Of a stretch of 64,000 nucleotides of DNA, positions 37,139 to 60,364 are shown piece by piece (position 1 is the first letter of the stretch; each line of letters opens with the position of its first letter). The notes beneath the pieces were generated by a model. The model did not search any database. It was not told the origin of the DNA and worked only from the letters and a program-made list of their open reading frames with translations. The position numbers and the translations under genes were made by a program. The stretch comes from Setoptus koraiensis. Lineage: Eukaryota > Animalia > Arthropoda. The DNA lies in the NCBI GenBank assembly GCA_048013815.1, contig CM106586.1, positions 1,426,001 through 1,490,000 on the forward strand. Direction: 5' to 3'.

Positions 37139-37929
37139 ATGCCTGATAACATTGAGAGAATTTTTTACTTTCAACATTGTGATAGTCGAAAGAACATTTT
37201 TTCTTTTGAGCCTTCATCTAAGTGCCAAATATGTAATGAATCTCCAGAAACATATATAGTTGCTCCATATTGCCTGCCATATCCATTCAGCAATCCTCAA
37301 GAAAATCCTTGTTGCATTGTTATGCGACCAAGTCATGGTGATTTCCTCAAGTAAGTATAATATAGTATCACTCCACCTACTTGTACTCTAGTAGTTCAAC
37401 TGCAATAATCAATACAATAACTTGATGAAACCCAAAAATCTACAGCAACTATCAAAACTCTACTGGTTTACATTTAGGACTCACAGATCTTAATGGTAAG
37501 GTTCACGAATTTGACAACAGCGGGTTATCTTGTGACCTCAACCCTGAATCGTGGCATAATTGTCTCATAGTTGATATAGTGACTACTGTAATAGAAGATC
37601 TCGGTGGTGCTTCGGATAGCTTGACTAAAAACAAACTAGGACTCACCAAGGACATCATAAGTCATAATTGGCATATTCGTCTGTCATCCTCTAGCCTTCG
37701 TAATAAATGGACGGCTAGTAGTTATCATGATGAAAACAACAACTGCTATAATTTTGTATTGAGTTTCCTCAAGTTATTAGATTTCTCCCAGCTTTGCCAA
37801 TCATTAGACGATAAAACTAAATTTTGCCAAGATTTTCTCGTGCCTAGGACGCGTCTCGCAGCTAGATATATAAGTTTGTACCGAAAGATGAAGAAAAATC
37901 ATGGTGTGTTCGTTTGTGAAACCAGCTGA
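37139..37929 (+). CDS. MKRN2OS: MKRN2 opposite strand protein-like (DUF4796); exons 37139-37350 and 37446-37929
   Basis: FQHC...C..C; spliced RPSHGDFLNNYQNSTGLHLGLTDLNGKVHEFD; YHDENNNCYNFV; FLVPRTRLAARYISLYR. Confidence 0.85.
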
Positions 37930-38019
37930 GTTTCATAATTGCTACGTCAAACCGTTTTATTTGATTGTATCGACTAAACTACTAATCCATGATCCAAGTC
38001 ATGGGAATATATGAAATGT

Positions 38020-39552
38020 TCAATTTTGAACATTATCAAAAAAATCTATACATATGCCCATGAGCATATTTGTCTTTTTTTCTTCCTTAATAGTCTCTTT
38101 TAGGTATTCCATTTTTTCCTTTATAGAATCATTAGTGGTGAAACTTATCTTACGTTTCGGTGGTACATAATTATCTAATTCAGTTACGGTCTTTCTTTTT
38201 TGAGGAACGTTGATATTTTTGTTGCTTTTGTTGGTTGCAGGATTGGTTGCCAAATACTTTTTTGGACCAACAGGAAATGAATCTAGACATAGTTGATATT
38301 TTTTCTTGGCTTTCAACCTCTTCGTTTCACTATACCATTTCACTAAATACTTGGACATCAACTTAAGTTCTCTGCGTCTTTTGATTTGTTTGTATACATC
38401 AGCCGCAGTGAGTGCATCATTGTATACTTGAGTGCATATCTTGTTGACCTCCGAAATGGTGAATGCAGATAGATAGTTTGCAGTGATTCTATGGGCAGAT
38501 TGTTCTAAACATAATGTTGTGTGGGCAGTGTCTATAATGAGTTGATCGACCATGGAATTAAAAATCTCGCCACTCTTCGTGATGATATGCTTATTGAATT
38601 GTGAATCTAAAGTGTCCCGGCAGGCATCTCTAGTCAATTCTTTCAAAAGTCGATTATAAATAACATTTGCACATTCATATTGAACAACAGATCTGACTTC
38701 TATTTCAATCAGGTACTCAAGGAATTGACTACTCATGGAGTCGATCAAATGTTGCCGGTCTTTTTCGCCCAAGTTCGGCTCCTCACGTTCATTCGTTTCT
38801 TGTGTGATGGGTTGCAGGCTTCTAAGGATTGCTGGATTATGTTTTTGTATGAATTCGAAGCATTCGTTTTCATCGCTGAAGGCCAACTCCTCGGTTGTGA
38901 ATTTGAGAGATACATTTGGTCTGTAGGATTTAAAAATAATCTTCAATGCTTGCTTGCGCTCACGCTCAATAAACCAATCAATTAATCTTGCTGACATCGC
39001 TGGTGATTGTGTATAGAGAAAAAATAATTTATGATAGTTACATAATGACCAGGCGCGTCTTACTTGCAGCGCGTGGGCAACCACTGGATGCTGTCGAGAT
39101 GATGGTGGTAATTTTGAGAGGGTCATTTGTAGATCTGTAGTATTCTCAGTGAATACATAATATAAGATAAGGTATCCAAGGAATTCACATTCATTATCAC
39201 TATGTATGGACTCGTATAATGTTTTCAATTGACTTTGGCATTGATTGAATTCTTCGTGATCTCCTATTTCAAGCGCAATCCTAGCGTGAGTCTCATAGAC
39301 TTGAACAGTGAATTCGTTTCTGATGAATTGTACAGTTAAGTCCTGTCTAATTGATTTCAATTGATCACAAGCATAACGGTAATCGTGCTGCTCATTATTC
39401 CGCCAATACTCAACAACCATCTCTAGTGACTTATGCAAGACGTTTAGAGGTCGCACAGTGGATGGATCTGGGGCTGAAGTCAAGCGGAGATATTGTTTTT
39501 CCAATTCTTGGCATGTCCCAACAATGGCCGTGTTCAAGTCGAAATCAGCCAT
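38020..39552 (-). CDS. LENG8: LENG8/Thp3-type SAC3-GANP (PCI) protein with a long helical C-terminal extension, intronless
   Basis: IVGTC...[15 protein letters not shown]...[10 protein letters not shown]...[29 protein letters not shown] is diagnostic of LENG8; residues ~245-510 are extra (see findings). Confidence 0.9.
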
Positions 39553-39815
39553 GGTTTAAACATGTATAGATAATACTGACTGAATAATACTCTCCAATCT
39601 CGTCTGAGAGATGATCTTATTCGAACAAAGGACAAGTACGATAATAATGATAATAATACAATAAAATATATTAGTAAAATAATAATATATGAGCTTCTCA
39701 TGTCATGGAGGAAGTGTTGCATTTCGTTATTTTTATTATCCTCTACAGACATGTGCTTTTTGTTTTCTATTATTATTTGTAGAAAAGGCGCGTTTTTTGA
39801 AGAGTGGTCAGGGGA

Positions 39816-40804: not shown

Positions 40805-43377
40805 TCTACCACCAGGCAAAGGTGCTCAGATTCGTTGCAATCTCTGTAGGTCTAATGGGGCCGTCTTTATGAATGAAAATCAGTTTCATTCTAGGTCAAT
40901 TAATAAATGATCATTAGCTAGAATTTTATTCGTCCAACCTTACTGAATGTATCTTCGATCATCAAGAACCCTTGCCGAAGATCGGTAACGCGAACTGTCG
41001 ATGTACATGTATAACGAATATGCTTGGTCTTCTTGCTTGGATCGCTGCTAAGATTATCTAGTAGTATCTAACTATTTTGAATCGCACTTAATCGACACTC
41101 CATCATCACATGTCGCCTCATTCAATGTCGCTTCTATCGCTTACTCATCGCATATTTTTCGTTTCAATATTTTCATCCAATGTGAATAAGTTCATAAAGA
41201 CTAATTGAGTATAGTTAGTAAGTAGCAAAAAGTTGTGCACTTATTCAGTTACTCATTTGCATTCAAAGAAATGCAAATGAGCATATTTCCGAGCTAGAAA
41301 TGGCATAGAAACAAGAAGAGAGGTGAGACTAGTGAGAATAATAATAATATATTTCAATTGGGCCTTACGTGTGCTACGAGCTCGATAGAGATGGAAAGAG
41401 AGCTTGGAGTAACTCAGACAAATATATTCAGTAGAAGAAAAAATGCCATGCTCAATGTATTGCCGCCATCGCACCAATAGTGTAGTGTTGACTCAAAAAT
41501 GACTCCGAGAAAGATGTCACCACATTTGGGCAAAAGCCTCCATTCCGCTAGGCTTATGGGTGGGCCTCAATTCTGTATCGCAAGCATCGACTACTGCACA
41601 CAAATTGGGGGAAAACTTTTTCTTCTTCGAAAGCTTCTTTGCTTATTACTATTATTAGTGCAAGTATTTTTCATGTTCGCTATCATTTTCGCAAGCTGGC
41701 AACTCGAGCAATATAATAATATACATGTTGCAGTTTTATATCTATCCACAAGAGCACATATACCCACTAGGCCTACAATATAGTTGTCGCCTAGCATGCT
41801 TCGTTGCCTCTTGTTGCATTGTTGTTCAATCTAAATAATATGCACAACAACAACAATATATTATTTATTCATAAGTGTTATGTACCTCTTCCTAGTCTAC
41901 ATGTACTAGCCATAGTTCTTTATGGCTAGGGTGTGTTTATGCTATGTTCTATCTAGATCACCGATGAGCTCTTTTTCGTTTCCGAATGTAGCTCTGAATA
42001 CACTATGAGTCATATTGAGCATATCTGTATGCCGAGATAGTTTCAAAAGAAAAGCTTCAATGTTGTTGTCTTCTGTTTGAAGCTGGTTTAAAACTCTGAA
42101 CTTTCTCTCTTCGATTAGTCTCAAAGCCATATCTATTCATTTGACTCTGACTTACTTCAGGGTTTCTTAATAATATGTGACCCATAGTGCATCTTTGAGG
42201 GGCAAGAGGAGAGGTTCACATTGAGGTTGCAACTATTTGTCGCAGCGTTGTCATGACATACGACAACGCTACTTGATTCATGGTCTATATGTTCTGCTGT
42301 AAGCTTTTTCCAATTGTAATTGATAAGCCTTTGAATCAAGCAATAGACGTGGCTTCGTTATAAACTTTGAATTTACAAGGGCCACTATAGACTATAGCTG
42401 ATAATTCAAATTTGTATCTGTATGTGAGCTTTAATATACACTCCATTGGTGTGTGAAAGTTAATGTCGAGACCCATTGGCACACTGAGACACAAATGTTT
42501 TCATGACAGTTGCCTACTATGATTGACTACAAAAGGCATGAATGACAAGCAAAATTACTAGCGCTGTGCATCTATGAGATTCGCAAAGTTTGTCATCCGT
42601 TTTGACTTACCAATTGGGAGGATCCCTAATTTTTGTTGTTTCATTTGTATGGTGAACACAACTTTGCATCCCTCTGATGAAACCTCTCTCATCTAGCTTT
42701 CGATTTTCACTAAAGGGGGCGCCAATGGATTGTGTTTCGTGTCTTGACAAATAAACCATAACAACAGCGCGGACGAGTCTCGGTGTGATATTATCACTAC
42801 TACCGGGGTGATATATACTGCTGATAGTATATGCTATATTGATATGGGACATTTTCATGACAGAAGAAGTTGAAAATCAAGAGATAGAACCAATCAAGTC
42901 TATGTGAGAATTCAAGTCAAAAAACTAATACCGATGCTAATGGAGCCTAACTACAGCTACTTTTAGCCTATTAGCGCGCCACAATTGCTTGGGCCTTAAT
43001 AGAGATTATAATACAAATATATATAGTAACCGCAACAACAGCATTTGCAACGGCAACAACAACAACGACATCAGCAATATCGTTCAAGTCTTGTCGTTGA
43101 TGTATTACTGTGCCTAGCCTTTGTGAGGTCCTGCAACAGTGACGCCAACATTGATGTTGCAGCTTATGTATGATGCTGTAACTGACTGTTCGGTTGATGG
43201 TTCTCTTGATGAGAATAATTATACTTAGACTAATAATAATAATAAAAACAACAGAGGATAAGAAGAAGAGAACAAGCAACGTCAGTAGACAGCAGTTGAG
43301 AAGCAGTAGAGGCAGCAACAACAAAAAGAAAGAAGAGTGTAATCACACTGCTGGTAGTGAAGAAGCTAGTTAAGGAA

Positions 43378-46300
43378 ATGTCGATATATACGTTAACATT
43401 GCAAAGAGAGGACGACTTTGACGAAGAGGACGATGATGGCCTCGAAGATCAAATAGCGTCAACAGCAACTGATACTGAGGATGAAGCTAATTTTCAACAG
43501 GCAAACAAAAGTAGTTTTATTAGTAGTGATACTGATGATAATGGCCGATCGATTGGACAGCAGCAACGCGATTATAAACAACAAGATGGTAGTATTAATA
43601 GACAGCAAGACAACAATAACGCTATATCAGAGTCAACTAATAGCAGAATAAATTTAAGAAAAAAGAAAAAACAACGTATTGAGCATTCAGTATCAGTGAC
43701 ATTAGAGGTAGCAGCTCAATTGAAGTCTCCATCTCATATTTTGTGGTGCAAAGACGGCAAACCAATTAGTGAATTAGGTGTGCCACTTGAGACACACAGT
43801 CCATTACCTCTAGACCACCCAAACTATCCGCATTATCATCAGCCTACTACTCCAACACCGACATCGTTTGCATCAGTTAGTAGCCCTACGCCATTTTCAT
43901 TTAGTGGCGCCTATAGTCCAACACCATCAACTAGACCAACAACTCCAGGTGGTGCCTTAGTGAAATATCGACAAGAGTTTAATGAATACGGTTGTAAGTT
44001 AACTATAAACGATATACAAGACGAAGATTATGGCCAATATGCTTGCAAGATTGTAAACGATGACGGCCAAATAAATGTCACCACTCAATTGAAACCACAA
44101 GAGAAACAACAACAACTTAAACAGCAGCAACATTTTAATTCAAGAATCAAGTCCAGCACCTATTTGCACAATATGGCTGAGGTGATTGAAGTGAAAGAGG
44201 GAGATAAAAATATTGAGTTGGGCATACAGATATTGCCCGAAGTTGGCGATGATCAAGATGATATGACACAGGAAGAAAGAGATGATTTCATCAAGAATAC
44301 AACAATTGTTTGGATGAAAGATGATAAAGAGATTGATCTAAACAATAAAATCAACCAAGATCTCTATGAAATACAATATGATCAACAGGAGGGCTTCCAT
44401 AAGCTTATTGTAAAGAAGGCCAATCAAAAAACTGCCGGCACTTACACCTGTCTGGTGACCAACGAAAGTGGGACTAGTCAATGTTCGACACAATTAATTG
44501 TAAACTCTGGCAAGCCAAGATTAACTTCAAGATTGGAGGATGTTGAAGTGCATGCTGGCCAATGTCTTGAGTTTAGAATTAAATCTACAGGTGTACCAAT
44601 TGTTGATTCGTGTCAATGGACAAAAGATGACGTAATTATAGATGTCAATGCTAAAGATCAACGTTTTACGATTACACGCGAGGAAGAAGAATATGATGAC
44701 GAACAACGTGTTGTAATATTTAAACTGAGCATTGACGATATGCGTCTAGAGGATTCTGGAGTCTATAAGTGTCGCGTAATCAATGAATTTGGTTACGATG
44801 AGTCATCATGTTATGTTAAGGTCTTACAAGAGGTCATTGAAGAGCATGAAGAAATTGAAGAGACCATAGAGGAAACAATGCACGTAACAGGTGAGACAAC
44901 TATCGAAGAGACTGATTATGTCGATGACCAAAGACGTGAGACTAATAGAACTAGGCGACAAGAACAAGAAGACACTGAAGAGGAATCGCTTATCAAGAGA
45001 AGAAAACAGGAAGATTCAGAACGTGGAGGACCTAAATTTGCTCAAACATTACATGATTTAGTAGCTAATGAAGGCGACTGTGATATTGAATTAGTTGTTA
45101 AAACTGAACGCACAAGTGGTCGAAGACAATCTAGACCATCAATAAAATGGTACATTGGCGACATGGAAATAGTTGAGGAGACTAGCCATGAGCAATATGA
45201 AATCATCAATGAGGAAGACGAAGACACTTACAAGCTCATTATAAAATCGGCCAATCGTGACACTATGGGCCAATATAAATGTCAAGCATTAAATAGTGTT
45301 GGCAAATCTGAAACAAGCGCAAGCTTCAAGGTAATAACTAAGCCTAAATTTACCAAACTGATGGAGGACGTTGAGGCATCAGTGGGTGAAACAGTTAAAT
45401 TGAGCGTTGCCATCGAGGGCGAGTGCAATTCAGAGGACATAAAATTCTATCAGGGCAGAAAACTAATCAGCGAGGAACAATCTACTGAAACAAACGTCAA
45501 GATATACAAACTGGTGAAGGACAGTGTCGATCGTTTTGATCGAAGAATAAAGGGCAAAGTTGTTGAATTAGTAATTGAGAATATTCACATTGATAACATG
45601 GGCACTTATGAATGTGTTGCTTCCAATAATGCGGGCTCATCAACCTGCCAAGCAGAAATTGAGGTATTTGCCGAGCCACGTATTACACGCAATTTAGATG
45701 AATCGTTGCGCGTAAACAAATCCGACGATATTAGACTGACAATTGAGGCTTGTGGGAGCCCCAGACCAGTGTATAGTTGGTTCAGGAATGGCGTGGGCAT
45801 TGCCGAAGAAGAGGACAGAGTGTATACAGAAAGTATTATAACGACAACTGTAACAACAACTACAACCACTACAACAACCACCTCAAGTAGAAGAAAATCA
45901 ACCACAAGCGCTGATCAGATGGATAATGTCTGCGGTGAGACATTGGTTATAAGACGTTCCACGCCCGATGATGCGGGCGTTTATTCTTGCAAGGTTGAAA
46001 ATCGTCTTGGTAGAGTGAAATCAAATGATTGCAAGATTATAGTTATAGGTTATGGAGATGATTTAAATAGTGAACCGAAAATCATAAAAGATTTTCAATC
46101 CAATCAAACCTATACATTGGAGGAGGGTGAAAATTTAACATTGAAACTATTGGTAGACGGACATCCACGTCCCGAACAATACTGGTACAAAGATGAAGAG
46201 CTCATCATAAAGCGGACCTCAAGGTTTGAGACAGAGTCCGATGACCAAGAGTACAAATTGAAGATAATGCACAGTGAAGTGAATGATTCAGGCAAATATA

Positions 46301-49300
46301 AATGTGTGTTTAAAAATAAATTTGGTCAAACAGAATCAAAACAAGTGACTGTTAAAGTGACACGAGTGACACGAGAATCACAAAAGAGACGTCAACCTAG
46401 CTCGCCAAAGATCACACTTGATGCCAAAGATTTGGTTGTCGGTCTTGGTAGCAATGTCTCGTTTGATGTTCGCGTGACTGGTCATCCAAAACCTTTTATA
46501 ACCTGGTATAAGAATGGACGTCGGCTCACTGAGACAAGTGACGGACGTATTACGTTCATAGAGGAAGAGACGACTGTCACCGAAACAGAGGAGGGTAGTA
46601 TTATCCATAAGCTTGTGATAAGGGATGTTCGTCAAAGCGACGATGCCATCTATAGTCTCAAAGCCGAAAATGATCATGGATCTGTCAAGTCGTCTCTCGT
46701 TAGCTTGACGGTTGATAGAAGAAAGACAGCCACTGATGAGATATCAACCACGAGTACAACTGTGAGCACTACAACAGAAACAACTGTGACAACAACAACT
46801 GAAGAACAAGAAGAACAGCAACAACAAAGTGTTAAGCAAGTGTCAGACAAGCAAAGAATAATTGAAGAAGAAGAGGAGAGAATGGTGGTCACTACTGTTG
46901 ATGAAGATGTTATAATGGACGAAGAGGAAGAAGATGAAGAAGAAATAAATAAAGTAAAGAGGAAAATTATAACAACTAAAAAGACAACTACCACTACAAC
47001 CACTGAGACGACTGAAGTTGGCGAAGACGAAGAAGAGGATGAAGAAAAGAAAAAATTGACTAAACGACAGCGTCGCCAGCAACAAATTCAACGAGAAGAA
47101 GAAGAAGAGACAGTTACCAAGCGGGATACTGTTGTTGACATGGAAGTAGACACAGACGAATGTAGCGAAACATCGAGGCGCGATTCGAGATCTACGAAAG
47201 ACAGCAGAAAGTATGTTAGTGAGGACCAATCGACAGAGTCTGAGATAGAGCGTGTCAAATCGGGCAAACGTTCTCAGGCCGAAATAAAAGAGAGACAAGA
47301 AGAAGTAGAGAGGACAGAAAAACGAAGAGACAGCAGAACAAGGCAAGATGACAAAGAGACCGTTAATGAACTGTCTAGTCCAGCTACAAAAAGACGCCCA
47401 TTGGGTGTCAAGCAAGAGATTGGTCTCGACAGTGATGACACTGGTCCAAAGATTAAAAAAACAATCACAACCAGAAGAACTAGAGAGGACGAGGAAGAGG
47501 TCATTATTGACGAAGATGATAAGGAAAACAAGAAGAAAGAAAAGCCTACTCCGGTGAGTGTTGACAAGCAATAATTGAACGCCGATCATTCTGCTTGCTG
47601 TAATCTGTAGAATGTCAGATTATTAGTCCATGAGTATGTTGATAGCGTTGATTTCCTGGCGAAAGTAGTGAGACGGCTGGATTGATTGCACGGAACAAAT
47701 CACCAATTGTTGCATGAATGCAGAATTCTGAATTCATGGATATTCATCGGAAGCGTGCGCTTGCTGTAAATATCCAAACGGCATCCGGTGCTTACAATCG
47801 AACAATGAATATTAAGATTATATTCATTGCTAGCAGTAACAGATCCAACAATGAATATCCATAGATATGGATTCTGGGTTTGCACATGTTTTTTTGAGCG
47901 TCTTTTATTTCGTGCAAATTCAATGGAATCAGTGAGAAAAAATACGAACGCGACAATTATTCAACCGTTTTTTTATGCGCAGTCGATCAATTGCAGCTAA
48001 CGCGCCTCAAGATGGGGATCAAGTGGGGGCTTCATCGTCCTATTTGATTTTGCTGTATTATAGGTACGGCATTATCGGTTATTGTGCATGCGTAGCTTTG
48101 TTTTGATAATAATATACGTTGTGAACATAACTGCCGCCAATTAGCTGATTTTTAATTTAAAAATAATTATAAACAACAATAAAGAAATATATATTTTAAT
48201 TAGAGATGTTGGACAAAGGATTCGCATGAACATAATCCAATTTAAGCTTAGCTAACAAGGAAAGACTTTAATATATCGATAGATATTAACAGTTTCTGTC
48301 CAATCTTGGTGTGATACATAATCTGATAGCGTGGTCGGCATGAACCAGAAATTCTGAGCATACCGGATGAAGTGGTTGCGGGAGTGGGAAGCTCACCGGC
48401 TCTCGTAGTTGATGTCAGCGCCAAACCGAGGCCAAATGTAAGCTGGTACAAGGATGGACTCAAGATCACAGAGAGGATGTGTGATAATGGAAGAATTGAA
48501 ATCAAACAGATCGAATCCGGAGATGGGCAGACAACAAAAGAGATACTGGTGATAAAAAACTTGAAACCATCGGATGTAGCAATCTACCATATCNNNNNNN
48601 NNNNNNNNNNNNNNNNNNNNNNNNNNNNNNNNNNNNNNNNNNNNNNNNNNNNNNNNNNNNNNNNNNNNNNNNNNNNNNNNNNNNNNNNNNNNNAGATCGC
48701 AAAATGTCTGCAGCGGATCAACCCGTGGTCACAGGAATTGAAGAAACACCTGTTACATCGGATACCGTGAGGGGAGCTGCACCGAGTGAGACTGGTCCCA
48801 TCGCCCCGGTGGTCCGAAGTGCTCCCAAAGAGATTCTCACACCCAAGGGTGGTAAACCAATCCTTGAAGTCGCATTCGAGGCCAATCCTAAACCAGAGAT
48901 AGTCTGGTACAAAGACGGACGCAAAGTTGTCGAGCCCACTGATGGCCGACTGGCCATCATTGAAGAAGTTAAGCCGAATAACTTAACAATAACGAAACTT
49001 GTTATTGACAATGCGCGCTTACTTGATGTTGGCGAGTATGTTGTGAAGGCTAACAACGACCAGGGATCTGCCGAAACTAAACCTATAAAGCTGAAATTGG
49101 ATAGAAATCTCCCGCAAGAGGTAGAGCCAGTTACTAAAGGCGAACAGGTTCCAAAGGATGGTTCGGGTCCAGAGCGAGCTCCACTTGTCATAGAGGATCT
49201 GCCGGATGAGAAACAGACAATTCCTGAGGGCGAAGAACTGGACCTGAAAGTCAAAGTCGATGGTAATCCTATGCCAAAGGCAGAATGGTTCAAAGATGAT

Positions 49301-52300
49301 AAGCCCATCAAAGCTGATGATCGTGTTGTTCCAACTGTTAATGACGATGGTGTATGCGAGTTGAAAGTCGCAGACGTAAAGCCTAGCGATTCTGGTGAAT
49401 ACAAATGCGTCTTGGAGAATGATACTGGCACTGTTGAATCGACACCACAAAAAATTGACGTAGTACCGTCGAGCACTCAGGACCTAGATAGACCAGAAGT
49501 GGCCACTAAGAAGCCATCGATCCTTGAAGATTTGCCTGCTGGACCCCTAAAATTTGTGGAGGGTAGACCTGGCGAACTTGCTTTAGTTGTCTCTGGAAAT
49601 CCCATTCCAGTTTGGACGAAAGATGGAAAACCAATCAAGGAATCTCCTAGTGTTCACACTGTTGTTGATGGTCCAGTGGTGAAGCTGCAAATCGATGAGT
49701 GCAAGCCATCTGATGCGGGTCAGTATAAATGCTTGTTGAAAAATGACCGTGGACAGATAGAATCGTCTCCGGCTAGGGTTGTCGTTGAATCTAGACCAGA
49801 TGAAGATGTTGAGATGGTCGATCAGACAAAATTGACACCAATGGCACCGACTATCATCAGCACACCAGAAGAAGTTGTTGCTGGTCCTGGTAGTTCACCA
49901 GTGCTAGAAGTGAAGGTTCAAGCGAACCCTAAACCCGAGATTACTTGGTACAAAGACGGTCAAGAATTAACTGAGAGACTTTGTGACAGAGGAAGGGTGG
50001 AGATAAGCGAAGTAGTGATGCCGGATGGTTTGACGACGAAGCAGCTGCTCAAGATAAATAACTTGAAACCTTCTGATGTGGCGATCTATCATATAAAAGC
50101 TGAAAACAGTGAGGGTGAGTGCGAATCAGAGCCAATTAATGTTCGCATAGATCGCAAAATGTCTGCAGCGGATAAACCCGTGGTCACAGGAATTGAAGAA
50201 ACACCTGTTACATCGGATACCGTGAGGGGAGCTGCACCGAGTGAGACTGGTCCCATCGCCCCGGTGGTCCGAAGTGCTCCCAAAGAGATTCTCACACCCA
50301 AGGGTGGTAAACCAATTCTTGAAGTCGCATTCGAGGCCAATCCTAAACCAGAGATAGTCTGGTACAAAGACGGACGCAAAGTTGTCGAGCCCACTGATGG
50401 CCGACTGGCCATCATTGAAGAAGTTAAGCCGAATAACTTAACAATAACGAAACTTGTTATTGACAATGCTCGTCTTGTTGATGTTGGCGAGTATGTCGCG
50501 AAGGCTAAAAACGATCAAGGATCTGCAGAAACTAAACCAATCAAGCTGAAGTTAGATAGAAATCTACCCCAAGAGGAGGTGCCAGTTGCTGAAGGCGAAC
50601 AGGTTCCAAAGGATGGTTCGGGTCCAGAGCGAGCTCCACTTGTCATAGAAGATCTGCCGGATGAGAAACAGACAATTCCTGAGGGCGAAGAACTGGACCT
50701 GAAAGTCAAAGTCGATGGTAATCCTATGCCAAAGGCAGAATGGTTCAAAGATGATAAGCCCATCAAAGCTGATGATCGTGTTGTTCCAACTGTTAATGAC
50801 GATGGTGTATGCGAGTTGAAAGTCGCAGACGTAAAGCCTAGCGATTCTGGTGAATACAAATGCGTCTTGGAGAATGATACTGGCACTGTTGAATCGACAC
50901 CACAAAAAATTGACGTAGTACCGTCGAGCACTCAGGACCTAGATAGACCAGATGTGGCCACTAAGAAGCCATCGATCCTTGAAGATTTGCCTGCTGGACC
51001 CCTAAAATTTGTGGAGGGTAGACCTGGCGAACTTGCTTTAGTTGTCTCTGGAAATCCCGTTCCAGTTTGGACAAAAGATGGAAAACAAATCAAGGAATCT
51101 CCCGGCGTTCGCACTGTTGTTGATGGTCCAGTGGTGAAGCTGCAAATCGATGAGTGCAAGCCATCTGATGCGGGTCAGTATAACTGCTTGTTGAAGAATG
51201 ATTTTGGACAAGTTCAATCGGCCCCCACCAAGGTGCTGGTTCAATCAAAACCGGAGCTACAGTCTGGTGATGATGTCGAGATGGTTGACGCCGATCAAGT
51301 ACTTCTGGCTCCAACCATCATCAGTATACCTGAAGAAGTGGTTACTGGTCTTGGTAGTACACCCACGATGGAAGTGAGTGTTCGAGCAAACCCCAAGCCG
51401 GATATCACCTGGTACAAAGACGGTCAAGAATTAACCGAGCGACTTTGTGACAGAGGAAGGGTAGAGACAAGCGAGGTAGTGATGCCGGATGGTTTGACGA
51501 CGAAGCAGCTGCTCAAGATAAATAACTTGAAACCTTCTGATGTGGCGATCTACCATATAAAAGCTGAAAACAGTGAGGGTGAGTGCGAATCAGAGCCAAT
51601 TAATGTCCGCATTGATCGTAAAATGTCCACTAAAGACAAACCTGTTGTCACTGAGCGTGATCTCTCAGAAGATCTGACCCCACAGTCTGATGGAAGGGAG
51701 CTGTCCGGACCTCGAGCACCCAAGATCCTGCGCAATCCTGACAATGTCACTGTGCCCTCTGGCAATACAGCTGTCTTTACAGCCCAGGTCTCTGGGACGC
51801 CTGTTCCCGTTATTACTTGGTACAAGAGCGGCCGAGTTCTTGATGGGACTACTGATGCGCGATTCATTTTCGAACAAGATGATGATGGTGTTCATAAGCT
51901 GATAATCGATAATGTTGATTCAAGTGATGAGGCTATCTACTCGATGAAAGCCAAGAATGACTTCGGTAGTGCAAAGACTTCGTTAGTCACTCTCACTGTA
52001 GATCAGTCTTCTGACAGTAAGCCTCGTTCAGCTCCTAAAATCACATTAAAACCAAAGAATGTAGTTGGTCGAGAGGGTCATGAGGCGACTATTGAGGTCG
52101 GTATTTCGGGAGTACCAAAGCCCGAAATCATCTGGTTCAGAAATGGACGCCGATTATCCGAATCGCAGTTCGTGGATAAAGCTGGTGATAAAAAGCCAAA
52201 GTTCACGATGGAAACATCGCCAGACGGCACTCTACAGAGGCTTATAATTGCAGATCTGACACCTGAAGACGAAGGAGCCTACAATGTGAAGGCCGAAAAT

Positions 52301-55300
52301 GAATTGGGCTCGGTGGAATCCACTCCGGCTCAGTTGACCGTTCAAAAATCTGGCCAGCTCCAAGATGATGATGGCAAGAAATCACGACCAAAAATTGTTT
52401 TGAAGCAACGAAACATTGTTGCTGGTCCCGGCAGTCGAGTTGCAATGGAGGTCACCGTTACTGGCTCACCCAAACCAAAGATTGTTTGGTATAAGAATGG
52501 TCGCAAAATTGAAAACTCAGCAGATGGTCGCATCAAAATCGAAACCTCCGATAATGGAACGACTCACCAGTTAGTCATTGATAATTTGGAACAAGATGAC
52601 GAGGCGATCTACACAATTACAGCAGAAAATCCTCTTGGAATCGAAAAATCAGAGCCTATCACCTTGAAGATTGATAATTCTTTGCCCGCTAAAGATTTAA
52701 CCAGCGCTAAGTTGACTGATGACGAGAAAGCTAATCGCAGGAAACCTAAATTCACTATCAAACCCAAGAACACCTCAGGCAAGCGTGGTGGTACTGCTGC
52801 TTTTGAGGTTAAAGTTACCGGCGAGCCCAAGCCAATAATTAAATGGTATAAGAATGAAAAGTTGATTATTGTCAATGAAGCTAAAGGGCGCATTCGTCTT
52901 GAGCAAACACCAGATGGAATAACAAAATTGATAATAGAGGATCTATGCGATGATGATGAAGACATTTATCATGTGGTTGCTGAAAATGATATGGGCCGCA
53001 CCGAGAGTTCACCCGTAACTCTAACAATTGAGGAAAGTGAAACGATAGTTGAAGAGGAGACCGTTGGCGACGGACCCTTTGCACCTCGTGTTGTGCAAGA
53101 TTTGCTAGATTTAGAGACTGTGCCTGGGGGAGACGTGACGCTTCGGGTAATAACAAAATCTAAACCTTTAGCTAATAATATTTGCTGGTTTAAAGATAAT
53201 CAACCCATTTTCGAGAACGAGCGCATCATAGCCAACAGTGACGGCGAGACACACACTTTAACTATGAAAGAGACACGAGCAGGGGACTCAGGTAGATATT
53301 CATGCCAGATCTCCAATGTCATAGGCCAGACAACGTCGCGCAACGCTAGTGTAAGAATTCAGCGTCCACTAGATGATCAAACCTACAGACTGGATATTGT
53401 TCAGGACTTGTTTGACATAGATTGTGTTGAAGAAGAGCGTGTTGTTCTTCAAGTTGTCGTTGACGCTTTCCCGAAGCCTACTATTGAATGGTTTAGAGAC
53501 GGTGTTGAGCTAGTAGAAAGTAGAAAATTTTCAATAGACAACGCCCAAGAAGATGGAAGATTGTACACACTGAGCATTGATCAGATAGGACCAATGGATG
53601 CCGGCGTGTATCACTGTAAATTGACCAACGAATTCGGAACTGAAACGTCTCAATTCGCGCGTATAACCGTGACTAGTTTTGACGATCTGACAGCAGCAAC
53701 GCCGGACATCAGCAAGCCTATGACTAGCGCTTTAAGTCCTAAGAAACCTGACAGCGATTCGCAAGGATGTGCGCCCAAGATAACCACCGATTTAAGCGAT
53801 GTCAAAGCCTCCATTGGGGATCGTGTGAAGCTATTTGTTGTATTCGAGGCTTCGCCAAACGCGCAAGTTGAATGGTTCCAAGATGGCGACAGATTGGAGC
53901 CAGGTCGAAATGTTCACATGGTCAACGATGGAACCAAGGCATCATTGACCATTGACTTACTTGATCTACCAGAGGCTGGAGTTTACTATTGCAAGTTGAC
54001 AAACGATCTTGGTACATGCAAATCAGCCAACGCTGTTGTGCAAATCGATGTTGGCTCGCTGAGGCGCCGCTCCACACTGAGCTCCATTCAATCAGGATCC
54101 GGACCAGCAACGCAAACTGGAGCAGCGTTAGACAAGCAGCCCAATCAGCAAACTGGAAAGAAACTCCTCGGAGACAGACCGCGTAGATCCATGGGCGAGG
54201 CAGCTACGACAGATCAGCCAGCCTCTGGTATGGGCTTAGATAAGCAGCCCGTGACAGATAGTATGTTCGCAAAACCACTTGAAGACATAACGGCCAGTGT
54301 CGACGACAAAAATCTCAAATTAATTGTGAGATTTAGTCCAAATCTAGAGGATAAACTAGATACATTGACTATTAAATGGCTACACAATGGCAAACCCGTC
54401 AGCACAAGATCCGGTCTCGATATGATGGCAACCACTGACTCAATCAACAACACAACGTTTGTCAATATACCCTGCGTATCATTGGAATCGGGTGGCACAT
54501 TCGAGTTAGTAGTAACTGACAATAGCTCAGGTGTACAGGAATCAACGCAATGCCAACTAACAGTTAAAGATTGTGCACGCTTCGTGAAAGGTCTTCGTGA
54601 TGGCGGTGCCATCGAGGGTGAACTACTAAAACTACAAGTCTTAGTGGCTGGTCAACCGGAACCAGAAGTACAATGGTTTAAGGACGGTCAGCGTATTGCT
54701 GATGCAAGCGATAATAGTCCAACAAATGACAAATACACTTCATTTAAGAGTGATGATGGAAATCATTATCTTATTATTGACAAGTTCACAAGAGAGGATG
54801 TGGGCGATTATCGCTGCGTGGCCAAAAACAAATCAGGCATGGCCGAAACGCACGGTTTAATAGAATTGGCTGGAAAACCGGCCTTTGCTACCGGTTTGTA
54901 CGATCGATTTGCAGTAGATGGAGATCGAAACATTGAATTGGTCGTCAAGACAGACAAACAACCATGGCAACCAAAAGTTGAATGGTATCACAATGGCATC
55001 AAGATTACGCCGTCTAATCTTAATTTTGTAACAAAGTTGCCCATAGACGACAGCGGACAGCACACTCTAGTGATTAAACAGATCACTGATGCAAATGTGG
55101 GTCAATTTTCATGTGTCGCCTCGAATCAATACGGCGAAGCTCGAACGGAGGCACAAGTGAAAATAATCAAGCCACCTCAAATAGTGAAAGGTTTGGAGGA
55201 TTATGAAGCCGCCGAAGGTGAAGCTGTGCTAATGGTGGTGAAAATACGCACCACAGATACTACAAGTTGTCATGTAAAGTTTTACAAGGACAATGTTGAC

Positions 55301-58300
55301 CTGAGTGACTCTACTGAAGCTCCAGTCAAGATAACTAAAACATCTGATGGTAGATTAGATACCTATAGAATAGAGATTGACAACATTTCGACCGGCATGC
55401 AAGGACACTATAAATGTGTGGCCAAAAACGATGCTGGTCAAGCTATCACACAGTGCTTCTTGAAGGTTAAATCTAAGCCCGCCATCACAAAAGATATCTT
55501 CAACCAGGAGGTGAACCAAAGTGAGACAGTTACATTTGAAGTGGTTTACACGGCCGACCCGAAGCCCAATGTTATCTGGATGAAGGATGGCATTAGATTG
55601 ACCTCGTTTGATCGTATACACATTGACACTGTCGAAGATGCTGGTGTCAGCTATTTAGTTATAAAGGATGTGCAACCGGACGACGCTGGTGTCTACAGTT
55701 GTCGCGTTGCAAACTTTATCGGCACCGTAACATCCTCTCCAGCCCAGTTGAATGTTATCAAGCGAATAGTACAAAAATCAATCACTGGTGATGGCACAGA
55801 TGTAATTTCGCCTAACTCTGATAGAGGTACCTCAACAACATTGGCTAGACCTCAGGAGGGTGTGGAAATATTACCAGATTACAAGTTGCCCCGTTTCACT
55901 AAAAAACTTCAAGACGAAGTTGTTACAACAAGCGAGAAAGTTACTTTCGAGGCTCAAGTCGAGGGTAATCCCAGGCCAGACGTATTTTGGTACAAAGATG
56001 GTAAGCGTATCGAGACGGGATCACGTTATACGATTACTCAAAAAGAAGAGAAAACTGCCACAAATAGTCAGACACTGACCACACATTATTTGACAATTGA
56101 GAGTGTCACTAGAAGAGACGAGGGAAGCTACTCTATATTGGCTAAGAATGTATTGGGTGAAACTAAGAACACGGTCATGCTGATTACACAGGAGCCACAA
56201 GCCCCAATAATATTGCGCCTGCAAGATCAGGAAGCTTTGCCCGGAAGTACCATCAAATTGGAAGCGGAAGTTATTGGACGACCGAAACCGGCTGTCAAAT
56301 GGCTGAAAGATGGCGATGAGATTGAGTTGAACATCTTGAACACTCATCCTGATTCTAATATACATTCGTTGACGCTGAAAAATTTAAATGATCTATATGA
56401 GGGTAAATACACTTTAGAGGCGACGAATATTGCTGGAACAACTCGTAAAGACTCTAATGTGAAACTGTTGGATTTGAGCAAGAAAGAGGTCCGCAGCAAA
56501 GACGATCAAATATTCCAAGAGAAACCTTTTATTAGGCGCGGATTGAAATTTAGCCAAGTGAATCAGGGCAGATCAATAAAGTTCGAAGTGCAAATAGACG
56601 GTCAGTATGACGATTTAATTTGGATGAAGGACGGTGAACAGATCAACTTGAAAAAGATGGATGACGATGGTAATTATATTGTGATAGATGACGTGCCAGC
56701 TAGTGGAGACCTGCAAGAGCCATTGCATGAAGACGATGAGCCGGATTCAGTAGACAGTAGAAAACGTGCACCAAGAATCTTACTAAGACCAAGGAATATC
56801 GTTGCTGGACGCGGTAGTAAAATTGCATTTGAAGTGAAAGTTAGTGGCGAGCCTAGACCCACAATTAAATGGTTCAAGAATGACAAGCTTGTTGAAGTTA
56901 GCGTTGAAGGAAATAAGATTGTTATTGAGGAATACATAGACAAGATCACTGGTTGTGTCACACAATATCTTGTTATAGACGATATTCAAGATTCTGATGT
57001 GGCTCACTACCATGTTGTGGTGGAAAATGAATTGGGCTCAGAAATCAGTCCCGAGGTGCGATTAGAGATAGACGATGAAATGGATGCTTCTGATGACACC
57101 AACGGTGGCACATTGACCTCTGGGCCCGACGTTAAGTCCGACGGTCCTCTCGACGATGGCAAGCGCCGTCCACCAAGAGTGCTATTGAGGCCTAAGAATA
57201 TAAAGGCCACACCGGGCAGCGATGTTCAGTTAGAATGTTTGGTAAGTGGTCATTCTAAGCCAGAGATCAAATGGTATAGGAATGGACGTCGTATAACAAC
57301 TACAGCGGATGGTCGTGTGAGTATTGAAGAGTTTAGCGAATACAAAGGCTATCAAAGATTGGTGATAAAACAATTGGAAGAATCTGATCAAGGCGAATAC
57401 ACAGTGACAGCAGAAAATGATTTCGGTCTAACAACATCGAATGGAGTTGAAATTGCTCTAGACGAAACAACAACCACAACTACAACAACAACAGTAACTG
57501 AAACGATCACCACAACATCACAATTCTTTGAGGAATTTGTTGATGACGGCAGCCAAGAGACCGATGACGGACCAACTAAGAAGAGAAAACCGAACTTCAC
57601 TTTGAGACCTCGCAACAAAACCGCTCCGATTGGTGGTAGTGTTGCCTTCGAAGTCAAGGTGTCAGGTGTACCAAAGCCCGACGTTATTTGGTTCAAGAAT
57701 GGACGCCGTATTCATTTGAGCGCCGATGGCCGGGTCAGAGTGGAAGAATTCTCTGACGGTGGATCCAAGCTGGTCATAGATGATGTCGAAGAAACAGATC
57801 ACGGTGTCTACAGTGCCCAGGCCACCAATCAATGGGGCAGCGAAAGGACTCGCGATGTTCAATTGCGCGTGACCAAACGATCGGAGGAAACCAGCAAGAC
57901 AACAACAAGTTCAACGGAAACAACCAAAACAACCACCAAGACAAAAGTGACAAGGGAGCATTATGTGTTTAGTGAGGAACGCAATGGTTATGTAACCCTC
58001 ACTATAAACGATGCACAATTAGATCATGATGGCGACTACAAACTCATTGTGCGCAATAAATTTGGCGAAGCTTACACTCAAGCACCATTAGTTGTCATAC
58101 CCAAGGTGGAGCCTAGATCAACGCTGAGCGAGGCCCCCAGCGGCCGCGACAGTAGCAGACGTAGCGAGAGTCGTGATCCTCGGGGCAGGACTCCATTCGA
58201 TGATCTAGAAGATTACAATCACGAGCTAGACAGGAATGTTGGAAATTTTGGCTCTGAATCGCGCTATCAATCTGGCGAGGACACATACTTGTTACAATTG

Positions 58301-60364
58301 CGCGACACTGAGTTCCCGTTACGTCTGAGACGTTACCTGAGATTTGGCGCTCGCCAAAGTCCAAGTCTGCGCTCCAATCTAATGGACGCCCATTGGGGAG
58401 CGGGCGCAAGAGTCACCGTGCGCGAGCGTAGAAAATTCACTGAGGTAATGGACGAAGAGATAGATGACGAAAAGAAGGGACTGGACTACAGATTGACACC
58501 GATGCGTTTACAAAAAGAGGTGGGCACTTGCGGTTATGCTGCCGCCCAATTGGAACAATTGCGTGTTGAGGCCGCAGAGAAGGTGAGCAAAAAGAAGGCA
58601 AGTGCAGGTGATGACGATGTTATCGCAAGAATGCCACCATTCTTCAGAGAGAAACTCAAGGATGCCGTGGTGAAAGAGGCCGGCGACGGCCAGCAAGAGA
58701 CTGTGTTCAGTTGCCTGGCCATTGGAGATCCCAAGCCTGAATATACCTGGTTCAGGAATGACATTATTATAACAGGTGAAGATAGCCGTATGCTCATCAA
58801 GGAGGGACCAGCGGGTCAGTCTCAGTTGCACATACGCGACCCTAGGGTATTTGATGCTGGCTGCTTCAAGTGTGTCGCCCGAAACATGCATGGTAGCGTA
58901 ACAACTAGAGCCCGCCTTCGTGTTGCCCAACGACCCAGCCGACCGGAACCGGTTGATATTGTCCAGGTGACCAGCCGCGAGGTGTTCCTGCAATGGAAAC
59001 CGCCCAGAGATGATCAGGGTGCCGATATAATAGGCTACAGGCTTGAGATGAGCCAATCGACGTTAGGTGGCCAAGACAATTGGACTGTTATTGCGGACAA
59101 CATTGGACACGAATTTTATGTTGTCGACGATCTGACACCAGGAACTAGTTACACATTTAGATTGAGTGCTCGTAACAAATTTGGTTGGTCCGACACAAGT
59201 TACTCCAGTTACTTAACAACGCGTCTGGATACCGACTCAAGTGGTGCTCGTTTACAAGTGCCACACGAATTGAAGAGTCGCCAATATGTGCAGGATATGG
59301 GTGACACAGCGGGACTGGGCAATTGCGAGGACCCGTTAGAGCCACGGTTAGATTACAATGTTGAACAGAGTCCCGTCAAGTTGAACGGAGAGAGTGGCCA
59401 AGAAAGCTGGCGAGACGCCTATTTGTTGCAATCGGAGATAGCGCGTGGCCGATTCTCATTGGTAGCCAAAGCGTTTACCAAAGCAGGAACTCCAAGACCC
59501 AGCGAAGATAGCGAATTAGAGCATCAAAGCGAGCAGGTTGTCATCAAGGCAATATTAACGGAAGATTCGCAAGCAGCACAAACAAAGAACGAATTTGATA
59601 TATTGAGATCGTTACGTCATGAGAAAGTTGTCAAGTTATACATGGCTTACAGAGATGACGATATGTTTGTGTTTGTCATGGAGAAATTATCTGGCATTGA
59701 TGTGCTATCATATTTGGCTGGCAAAAGTTATTATAATGAAGATTGTGTAAGCAAAATAATTACACAAGTTATGGACGCATTAGAATATTTACACTTCAGA
59801 GGTATGTGTGTATTAGAGCTACAACCTGACAATGTTGTCATGACTGACGGTAGATCTACATCTATCAAATTGGTTGATTTCTCTAGTGCAAGATTTGTAC
59901 CCAAGAGTGGTGCTAGAGTTCCACGAAGCCAAACACAAAACATTGAATATTGTCCACCCGAGGTGATAGCCGGTCACGAAGTGTCAACGGCTAGCGATAT
60001 TTGGTGCGTCGGTGTTATTACCTATGTGCTATTGAGTGGTTTCAGCCCATTCCAGGGTGCCACGGAAGAGGAGACAATAGAAAATGTTAAACTGGGTAGA
60101 TATAAATATGATCATCTTTATGGTAATTGTACGCCAGAGGTGACAAGATTCCTTATTAATGTTTTCAAGAAACATTCTTCTAAGAGGCCAACAATTGAGC
60201 AGTTATATGAAAACAAATGGCTCATACCAAACGAATTCATGATAAGAAAGAAACAATTGGCAACATTCAGATCAGAGAAGATAGCCATCTTTGCTGAACA
60301 ATTCCATAAAAATAAACGAGCCGGATGCTCAGAGAAATTGCTAAATCTACTCGGATACTCATGA
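43378..60364 (+). CDS. Unc-89: Giant muscle protein, Unc-89/obscurin-like (many Ig domains, FN3, C-terminal kinase-like domain); exons 43378-47553 and 48330-60364 (with assembly gap)
   Basis: Repeated Ig motifs (W.KDG...D.G.Y.C). Linker DTYLLQLRD...VRERRKFTEVMDEEIDDE and PPFFREK-Ig-FN3 are followed by a kinase SEIARGRFS...LRHEK...VMEKLSG...QPDNVVM resembling arthropod Unc-89 kinase 2. Intron CCG|GTGAGT (47554) to GATAG|CGT (48329), phase 0. Confidence 0.85.
48594..48693. other. Assembly gap (100 N placeholder) inside the obscurin exon
   Basis: Exactly 100 N; the frames on either side are offset, so the true length is not 100. Confidence 0.99.
48694..51612 (+). repeat. Two tandem near-identical coding super-repeats (1455 and 1464 bp, four Ig domains each)
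   Basis: AGATCGCAAAATGTCTGCAGCGGA at 48694 and 50149; the third unit start (TGATCGTAAAATGTCC) at 51613 diverges immediately afterwards. Confidence 0.95.

Follow-up and report, generated by a model that had tools for sequence, protein, structure and literature searches.

A LENG8-type SAC3/PCI protein without an N-terminal arm and with a 270-residue C-terminal tail in two sister mite species

LENG8, GANP and SAC3D1 are mutually exclusive scaffolds that steer the same PCID2-DSS1-DDX39B core towards retention/decay, export or a cytoplasmic role, and the fate of the RNA is set by the part of the scaffold that lies outside the SAC3 domain. SAC3D1 (SHD1) is a short SAC3-domain protein that starts near the domain edge and carries a helical C-terminal extension. 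Human LENG8, an RNA-surveillance protein, and yeast Thp3 are the scaffolds of the LENG8-PCID2-DSS1 complex (TREX-2.1) and of the Thp3-Csn12-Sem1 complex, respectively. In human LENG8, the N-terminal region recruits U1 snRNP and PAXT/exosome (PMC12363940), and binding of PCID2 by GANP, LENG8 and SAC3D1 has been found to be mutually exclusive (PMC13105079). The CID of GANP/Sac3/Xmas-2 is the TREX-2 helix to which ENY2/Sus1 and centrin/Cdc31 bind; in yeast Sac3 it corresponds to residues 723-805. In GANP, the CID comprises residues 1162-1256 (PMC3378895). Over-expression of the SAC3 domain of LENG8 or GANP alone leads to nuclear retention of mRNA in human cells, and an engineered LENG8-SAC3::GANP(990-1350) chimera, which recruits ENY2 and CETN3, relieves this dominant-negative effect of the SAC3-only protein on export (PMC12363940).

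In the gene described here, exactly the part outside the SAC3 domain has been exchanged. The gene lies in a 64,000-nt stretch of DNA of the plant-feeding eriophyoid mite Setoptus koraiensis, referred to as the window, and a preliminary description of the sequence had presented it as one uninterrupted 510-aa ORF that starts right at the edge of a LENG8/Thp3-type SAC3 domain. The list of ORFs confirms a single open frame with an ATG start, and the gene with its conserved domain can be laid out as follows.

38020..39552, minus strand: complete intronless coding sequence, 510 aa plus a TGA stop codon at 38020-38022 (ORF list)
37956..37961, minus strand: AATAAA poly(A) signal, 58 nt past the stop codon (read from the sequence)
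39553..39811, minus strand: 5' flank that aligns with the sister species, probably the 5'UTR and promoter; in-frame stops precede the ATG
38833..39531, minus strand: LENG8/Thp3-type SAC3/PCI domain, aa 8-240 (PDB matches, Pfam, AlphaFold2, dN/dS, tree)

The start at the domain edge holds in both species in which the gene was found, since the domain match begins at aa 8 and an in-frame stop precedes the ATG by two codons in the window and by ten codons in the sister species. Over aa 8-236, the protein matches the PCI domain of human LENG8 (9dlr_A) with an E value of 2.8e-78, about 60% identity and one 2-residue gap; among PDB sequences, the same domain matches yeast Thp3 with E 9.4e-41, GANP with E 1e-6 and Sac3 with E 6e-4. 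The Pfam family SAC3_GANP spans aa 20-239 (E 1.5e-26), AlphaFold2 models aa 30-240 with pLDDT values of 76-92, and dN/dS over the SAC3/PCI domain is 0.04 relative to the sister species. In a tree of PCI domains, the query falls within the acariform LENG8 clade (SH-aLRT 100). This tree and the gap between the LENG8 and GANP scores bear out the earlier assignment of the domain as LENG8-type and not GANP-type, and thus as a PCI domain of the same type as that in the LENG8/Thp3 scaffolds.

Other single-ORF genes of the window encode Raptor (1274 aa), a fatty-acyl reductase, a chitin deacetylase and a 3886-aa Ig/kinase protein; with such neighbours in an intron-poor genome, an intronless gene is normal here and not a sign of retroposition. 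GC and GC3 are equal in both halves of the ORF, are the same as in the neighbouring genes and run uniformly over the junction between domain and tail. When the stretch was sought in sequencing runs by means of sampled 31-mers, no RNA run holding it was found. Downstream, a 116-aa ORF on the plus strand (37579-37929) with a DUF4796_C domain (E 8e-21) is convergent with the LENG8-like gene and ends about 90 nt from its stop codon, such that the two 3' ends almost meet. Upstream of the gene, the segment 39840-40600 is GC-rich, with gggcgggag-type motifs, amid AT-rich surroundings, and its plus strand contains proline/alanine-rich ORFs. The plus strand also harbors two giant uninterrupted Ig/I-set ORFs of 1405 aa (43357-47574) and 3886 aa (48704-60364), the latter ending in FN3 and protein kinase domains in an obscurin/titin-like manner; its ortholog adjoins the adiponectin receptor (AdipoR) gene on contig L008, so that synteny is kept.

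It is on either side of the PCI domain that the protein departs from all other LENG8s compared. A word-indexed search returned a single full-length relative (P0001; 510 aa, 85% identity, 100% coverage), together with many LENG8s that match the PCI half only. In alignments, the closest LENG8s all have the N-terminal motif NWEDWP..LRKFAC.., an RS-rich stretch of 150-330 aa and a short C-terminal end. We compared 69 homologues from mites, insects, molluscs, vertebrates and a coral: all 69 have an N-terminal extension, which is absent only from the query and P0001, and in all 69 the chain continues for no more than 72 aa after the PCI domain, usually for about 20 aa, as opposed to 270 aa here. The statement that LENG8 normally ends soon after the PCI domain is therefore true of the 69 homologues. 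Likewise, the report that nothing of the long LENG8 N-terminus is left is sustained by the upstream in-frame stops and by tblastn searches for an N-terminal exon, in which the N-terminal regions of seven canonical eriophyoid LENG8s had no match in the window or in the sister-species contig. The NWEDWP motif and the RS-rich stretch, present in 33 other eriophyoid LENG8s, are missing here, and so is the whole of the region that binds U1 snRNP and PAXT in human LENG8 (PMC12363940). The tail appears peculiar to this gene, as had been suspected: the other chelicerate, mite and eriophyoid LENG8s that were compared do not carry it, and no second copy was found elsewhere within the window. Judged from these sequence comparisons, the combination of a LENG8-type domain lacking the N-terminal arm with a 270-aa tail is new and known in two sister species only.

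The full-length relative is encoded on an independently assembled 8.9-kb contig (L001) of the sister species, obtained from SRR33593474. The two ORFs are of equal length and 85% identical at the amino acid level with zero indels, and their flanks are syntenic (blastn of L001 2246-5175 against window 39811-36919, about 80%). Between the window and L001, dN/dS amounts to 0.07 for the whole ORF and to 0.11 for the tail. Within the tail, conservation varies considerably along the chain: aa 361-420 are 100% identical in both species, aa 262-322 (helix 1 and the start of helix 2) are 74% identical, and the loosest stretches of the protein are found at aa 421-480, with 67% identity, including aa 446-480 with a dN/dS of 0.45, before conservation rises again to 90% identity and a dN/dS of 0.06 at aa 481-510. 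In a sequencing run from another study, 0.98 of the sampled 31-mers of the stretch are present. A mis-join at the junction had been named earlier as a caveat; the same ORF in the independent L001 assembly and the 0.98 word share in the other study's run speak for a genuine junction. By the comparison of the two species, the gene is real and strongly conserved, with both of its halves under purifying selection.

The tail itself can be divided into the following elements, the boundaries of which are predictions.

38767..38832, minus strand: acidic linker that follows the PCI domain, aa 241-262; unstructured by prediction (AlphaFold2); canonical LENG8s end about here
38617..38766, minus strand: tail helix 1, aa 263-312 (AlphaFold2, low confidence)
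38464..38604, minus strand: tail helix 2, aa 317-363 (AlphaFold2, low confidence)
38281..38457, minus strand: tail helix 3, aa 366-424, with a basic second half containing 15 K/R residues (AlphaFold2, low confidence; composition)
38251..38550, minus strand: block under the tightest constraint of the whole chain, aa 335-434, with 98% amino acid identity and pN 0.008 versus pS 0.47
38335..38361, minus strand: LMSKYLVKW, aa 398-406, with the tail's single Trp; its spacing conforms to that of Sfi1/Sac3-type centrin sites, L[LM]xxx[FL]xxW
38149..38199, minus strand: bipartite NLS-like KRK-x11-KRK, aa 452-468, in the poorly conserved aa 425-474 (pattern search)
38026..38130, minus strand: C-terminal amphipathic helix, aa 475-509 (AlphaFold2)

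AlphaFold2 assigns the tail a pLDDT of 39, with all tail helices below 50 and aa 425-474 unstructured; at values below 50, the helix boundaries and any fold are uncertain. Internal repeats were sought among the tail helices and none were found. In the sister species, both KRK clusters persist amid varying neighbouring residues.

The reading that we regard as the probable one is that of a functional, lineage-restricted LENG8 derivative of an early-branching eriophyoid mite whose PCI core is docked to a different nuclear partner or site by the new C-terminal module. With about 60% identity to human LENG8 and a dN/dS of 0.04, the LENG8-type domain has most likely kept the ability to assemble with PCID2 and SEM1/DSS1 and to engage DDX39B/UAP56, in the manner of the human LENG8 and yeast Thp3 complexes. 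In place of the disordered N-terminal arm, the protein would present a C-terminal module in which three long helices, the third of them basic and near-invariant, are followed by an NLS-like linker and, at the very end, an amphipathic helix. Through aa 335-434, the module probably brings the PCI core to its different partner or site, and the invariant, basic, Trp-anchored helix (aa 388-420) is a candidate site for RNA or for an EF-hand protein of the centrin or calmodulin type. Import into the nucleus would run via the KRK-x11-KRK motif. In its layout, the protein resembles SAC3D1, the third mutually exclusive PCID2 partner (PMC13105079), which has a similarly short, edge-starting architecture with a helical C-terminal extension; however, the domain is LENG8-type by sequence and tree, and an exhaustive phmmer search gave no SAC3D1 match for the tail. 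The order of parts is also the same as in the engineered LENG8-SAC3::GANP(990-1350), namely a LENG8 SAC3 domain with a helical module on its C-terminal side. In the engineered protein, however, the tail is authentic GANP and recruits ENY2 and CETN3 (PMC12363940), whereas the natural tail has no demonstrable GANP ancestry.

The latter point bears on the best-surviving alternative, according to which the tail is a true CID-like platform: a single helix would be wrapped by copies of ENY2, with centrin bound at W406, and would anchor the LENG8-PCID2-SEM1 core at the nuclear pore basket; the result would be a TREX-2.1/TREX-2 hybrid that may offset a lost GANP. We consider this unlikely, even though several features are in line with it. 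As in Sac3 and GANP, the tail is located C-terminal to the SAC3 domain and is predicted to be helical; the invariant block of about 100 residues (aa 335-434) is of roughly the same length as the CID (GANP 1162-1256; PMC3378895), and it ends just past the Trp motif, as expected if every helix face were buried by partners. That the engineered LENG8-SAC3::GANP(990-1350) recruits ENY2 and CETN3 (PMC12363940) indicates that an architecture of this kind is viable. The preliminary description had further pointed out Sfi1-type centrin-site spacing in the tail, and this stands, as LMSKYLVKW fits L[LM]xxx[FL]xxW; the 36-residue string quoted there ([36 protein letters not shown]) is found at aa 395-430. 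The pattern of a basic helix with a Trp anchor and hydrophobic residues at -3 and -7/-8, as in centrin sites, likewise fits LMSKYLVKW, which is invariant in the sister species; with so few positions, p comes to about 0.05. The query contains L[LM]xxx[FL]xxW a single time, and background ORFs totalling 12,161 residues gave one match as well, a suggestive count for a motif that is, however, short and defined after the fact.

The only true CID sequence compared was that of yeast Sac3 (residues 765-805, from PDB 4mbe, 3fwb and 3fwc), the best local alignment of which falls on aa 385-406 of the tail. Here, LKKKFFEKW of the Cdc31 site (Sac3 794-802) pairs with LMSKYLVKW, aligning Sac3 L794-W802 with the motif at four identities and two conservative exchanges in nine positions. 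Yet the alignment scores lie within the shuffle distribution, with p values of 0.11 for the 41-aa segment and 0.055 for the Cdc31 site, and the resemblance to a true CID, at p 0.05-0.11 no better than chance, therefore does not carry the homology that had been proposed. A putative 27-aa human GANP peptide given in the preliminary description matched no PDB chain, with the proviso that the PDB chains may not cover GANP 1236-1256. As opposed to the single helix of about 90 aa in the CID, which binds two copies of ENY2/Sus1 upstream of the centrin site, AlphaFold2 predicts two helices (aa 317-363 and 366-424) with a break at aa 364-365, albeit at pLDDT below 50, and no internal repeat hints at a pair of ENY2 sites.

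Above all, no search gave significant similarity between the tail and a CID. Matches at E<=10 were absent from a phmmer search of aa 241-510 against PDB sequences, a Pfam search of the tail returned nothing relevant at E<=10, a word search with aa 360-450 at E<=10 recovered the sister-species ortholog only, and the ESM Atlas held no usable match. Run exhaustively against 1.84 billion protein representatives, phmmer recovered for the tail only that ortholog and P0121. A tail profile made from the two available sequences is too shallow for the detection of remote homology. The stems leading to Eriophyoidea are long (2.99 changes per site for AdipoR and 0.59 for LENG8), and such accelerated protein evolution makes a remote homology of the tail harder to detect. 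The claim that the tail is homologous to the CID of GANP/Sac3/Xmas-2 thus found no backing in phmmer, Pfam, PDB, word or Atlas searches, and in the databases covered the tail is without demonstrable homology to known proteins, the GANP/Sac3 CID included. The likeness to GANP/Sac3/Xmas-2 comes down to a helical region C-terminal to the SAC3 domain, a constrained block of about CID length and a basic Trp motif with centrin-site spacing, whereas supported sequence similarity is lacking, as are a GANP-type SAC3 domain, FG repeats, an RRM and the MCM3AP region. We accordingly assign a rather low probability to the tail being a highly diverged or convergent CID-like platform in which aa 335-434 would recruit ENY2 and centrin, making the protein a natural LENG8-SAC3::CID hybrid that possibly replaces GANP.

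Several matches met along the way were discarded. P0121, a cuticle-like protein of 630 aa with tandem repeats, aligns with the KRK-rich linker in 10 stretches and was dismissed as spurious; spurious, too, is the LRR protein 4u09, the sole PDB match of aa 367-448 (E 0.012, summed over repeats). The Pfam match to SecA_DEAD (E 0.012, below the family's cutoff) and an Atlas match to eIF3m_C_helix (0.77) are at chance level.

A further alternative sees the protein as a dominant-negative or regulatory SAC3-only molecule that, devoid of both the recruiting arm of LENG8 and a pore tether, would titrate PCID2-SEM1-DDX39B away from canonical LENG8 or GANP complexes, with the tail serving import, stability or self-association only. 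This would be in keeping with the nuclear retention of mRNA by over-expressed bare LENG8 or GANP SAC3 domains (PMC12363940), with the mutually exclusive binding of PCID2 by GANP, LENG8 and SAC3D1 (PMC13105079) and with the presence of an NLS-like motif. We nevertheless deem it quite improbable, because a tail that served import or stability alone should not hold 100 residues at 98% identity when synonymous sites have changed at 47%, and because titration presumes a canonical LENG8 coexisting in the genome. An artefact in the form of a mis-join, a pseudogene or a chance extension of an ORF past a LENG8 fragment is extremely improbable in view of the same indel-free ORF in the independent assembly of another species, with a tail dN/dS of 0.11, the 0.98 share of sampled 31-mers in the run from another study, the uniform composition over the junction and the syntenic, alignable flanks.

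To return to the favored reading of a LENG8 derivative with a new docking module, its interest lies in the loss of the arm that recruits U1 snRNP and PAXT, together with the gain of an extremely constrained helical module, in a mite lineage with massive intron loss. Knowledge of the tail's partner would reveal by what means the decision between retention and export may be rewired, and the gene would offer a natural test of the dominant-negative model of LENG8. Should this partner be ENY2 plus centrin, the protein would represent the first natural hybrid of both complexes; otherwise, it would be a lineage-specific curiosity of modest general interest. If the CID-like interpretation were true, an RNA-retention scaffold would have been turned into a pore-tethered export scaffold, as a natural counterpart of the chimera engineered in human LENG8 work (PMC12363940).

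As to the origin of the gene, the PCI-domain tree places the query and its sister-species ortholog as sister to 33 canonical LENG8s, the joint, long-stemmed clade (SH-aLRT 100) being nested inside the acariform mites. The AdipoR gene of the window matches that of Fragariocoptes setiger at 71% and those of the nearest non-eriophyoid mites at 39-51%, which marks the group as Eriophyoidea; in the AdipoR tree, the window sequence and its syntenic ortholog on contig L008 (SRR33593474, dS 0.58) fall outside the main eriophyoid clade. The two trees thus concur, and the 510-aa gene may have arisen when an early-branching eriophyoid lineage remodelled its LENG8 ortholog; equally allowed is an old paralog that has been retained only in this early-branching lineage. 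The loci of canonical eriophyoid LENG8s show several contexts, often beside a convergent WD40 gene, and none like that of the window. Of seven canonical LENG8s checked by sample, none (0/7) came from SRR33593474, the sample of the sister ortholog.

Some further observations concern these comparison sequences. A WD40 gene of about 350-385 aa stands tail-to-tail with canonical LENG8 in L004 (11248-12375), L005 (3607-4734), L007 (2426-3481) and L011 (1958-3112). The WD40/LENG8 pair, sometimes overlapping by a few bases, thus recurs in several main-clade eriophyoids and is absent at the window locus. One canonical eriophyoid LENG8 fragment, P0031, is filed in NCBI as a protein of Olea europaea, most likely owing to mite contamination of the olive assembly. 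Finally, SRR33593474 contains two adiponectin receptor genes, one at L008 552-1460 (window-syntenic, 97% identical at the amino acid level) and the other at L009 6566-7459 (78%), the latter in a different context (UCH, VPS11), which points to a lineage-specific duplicate or to a second mite species in the sample.
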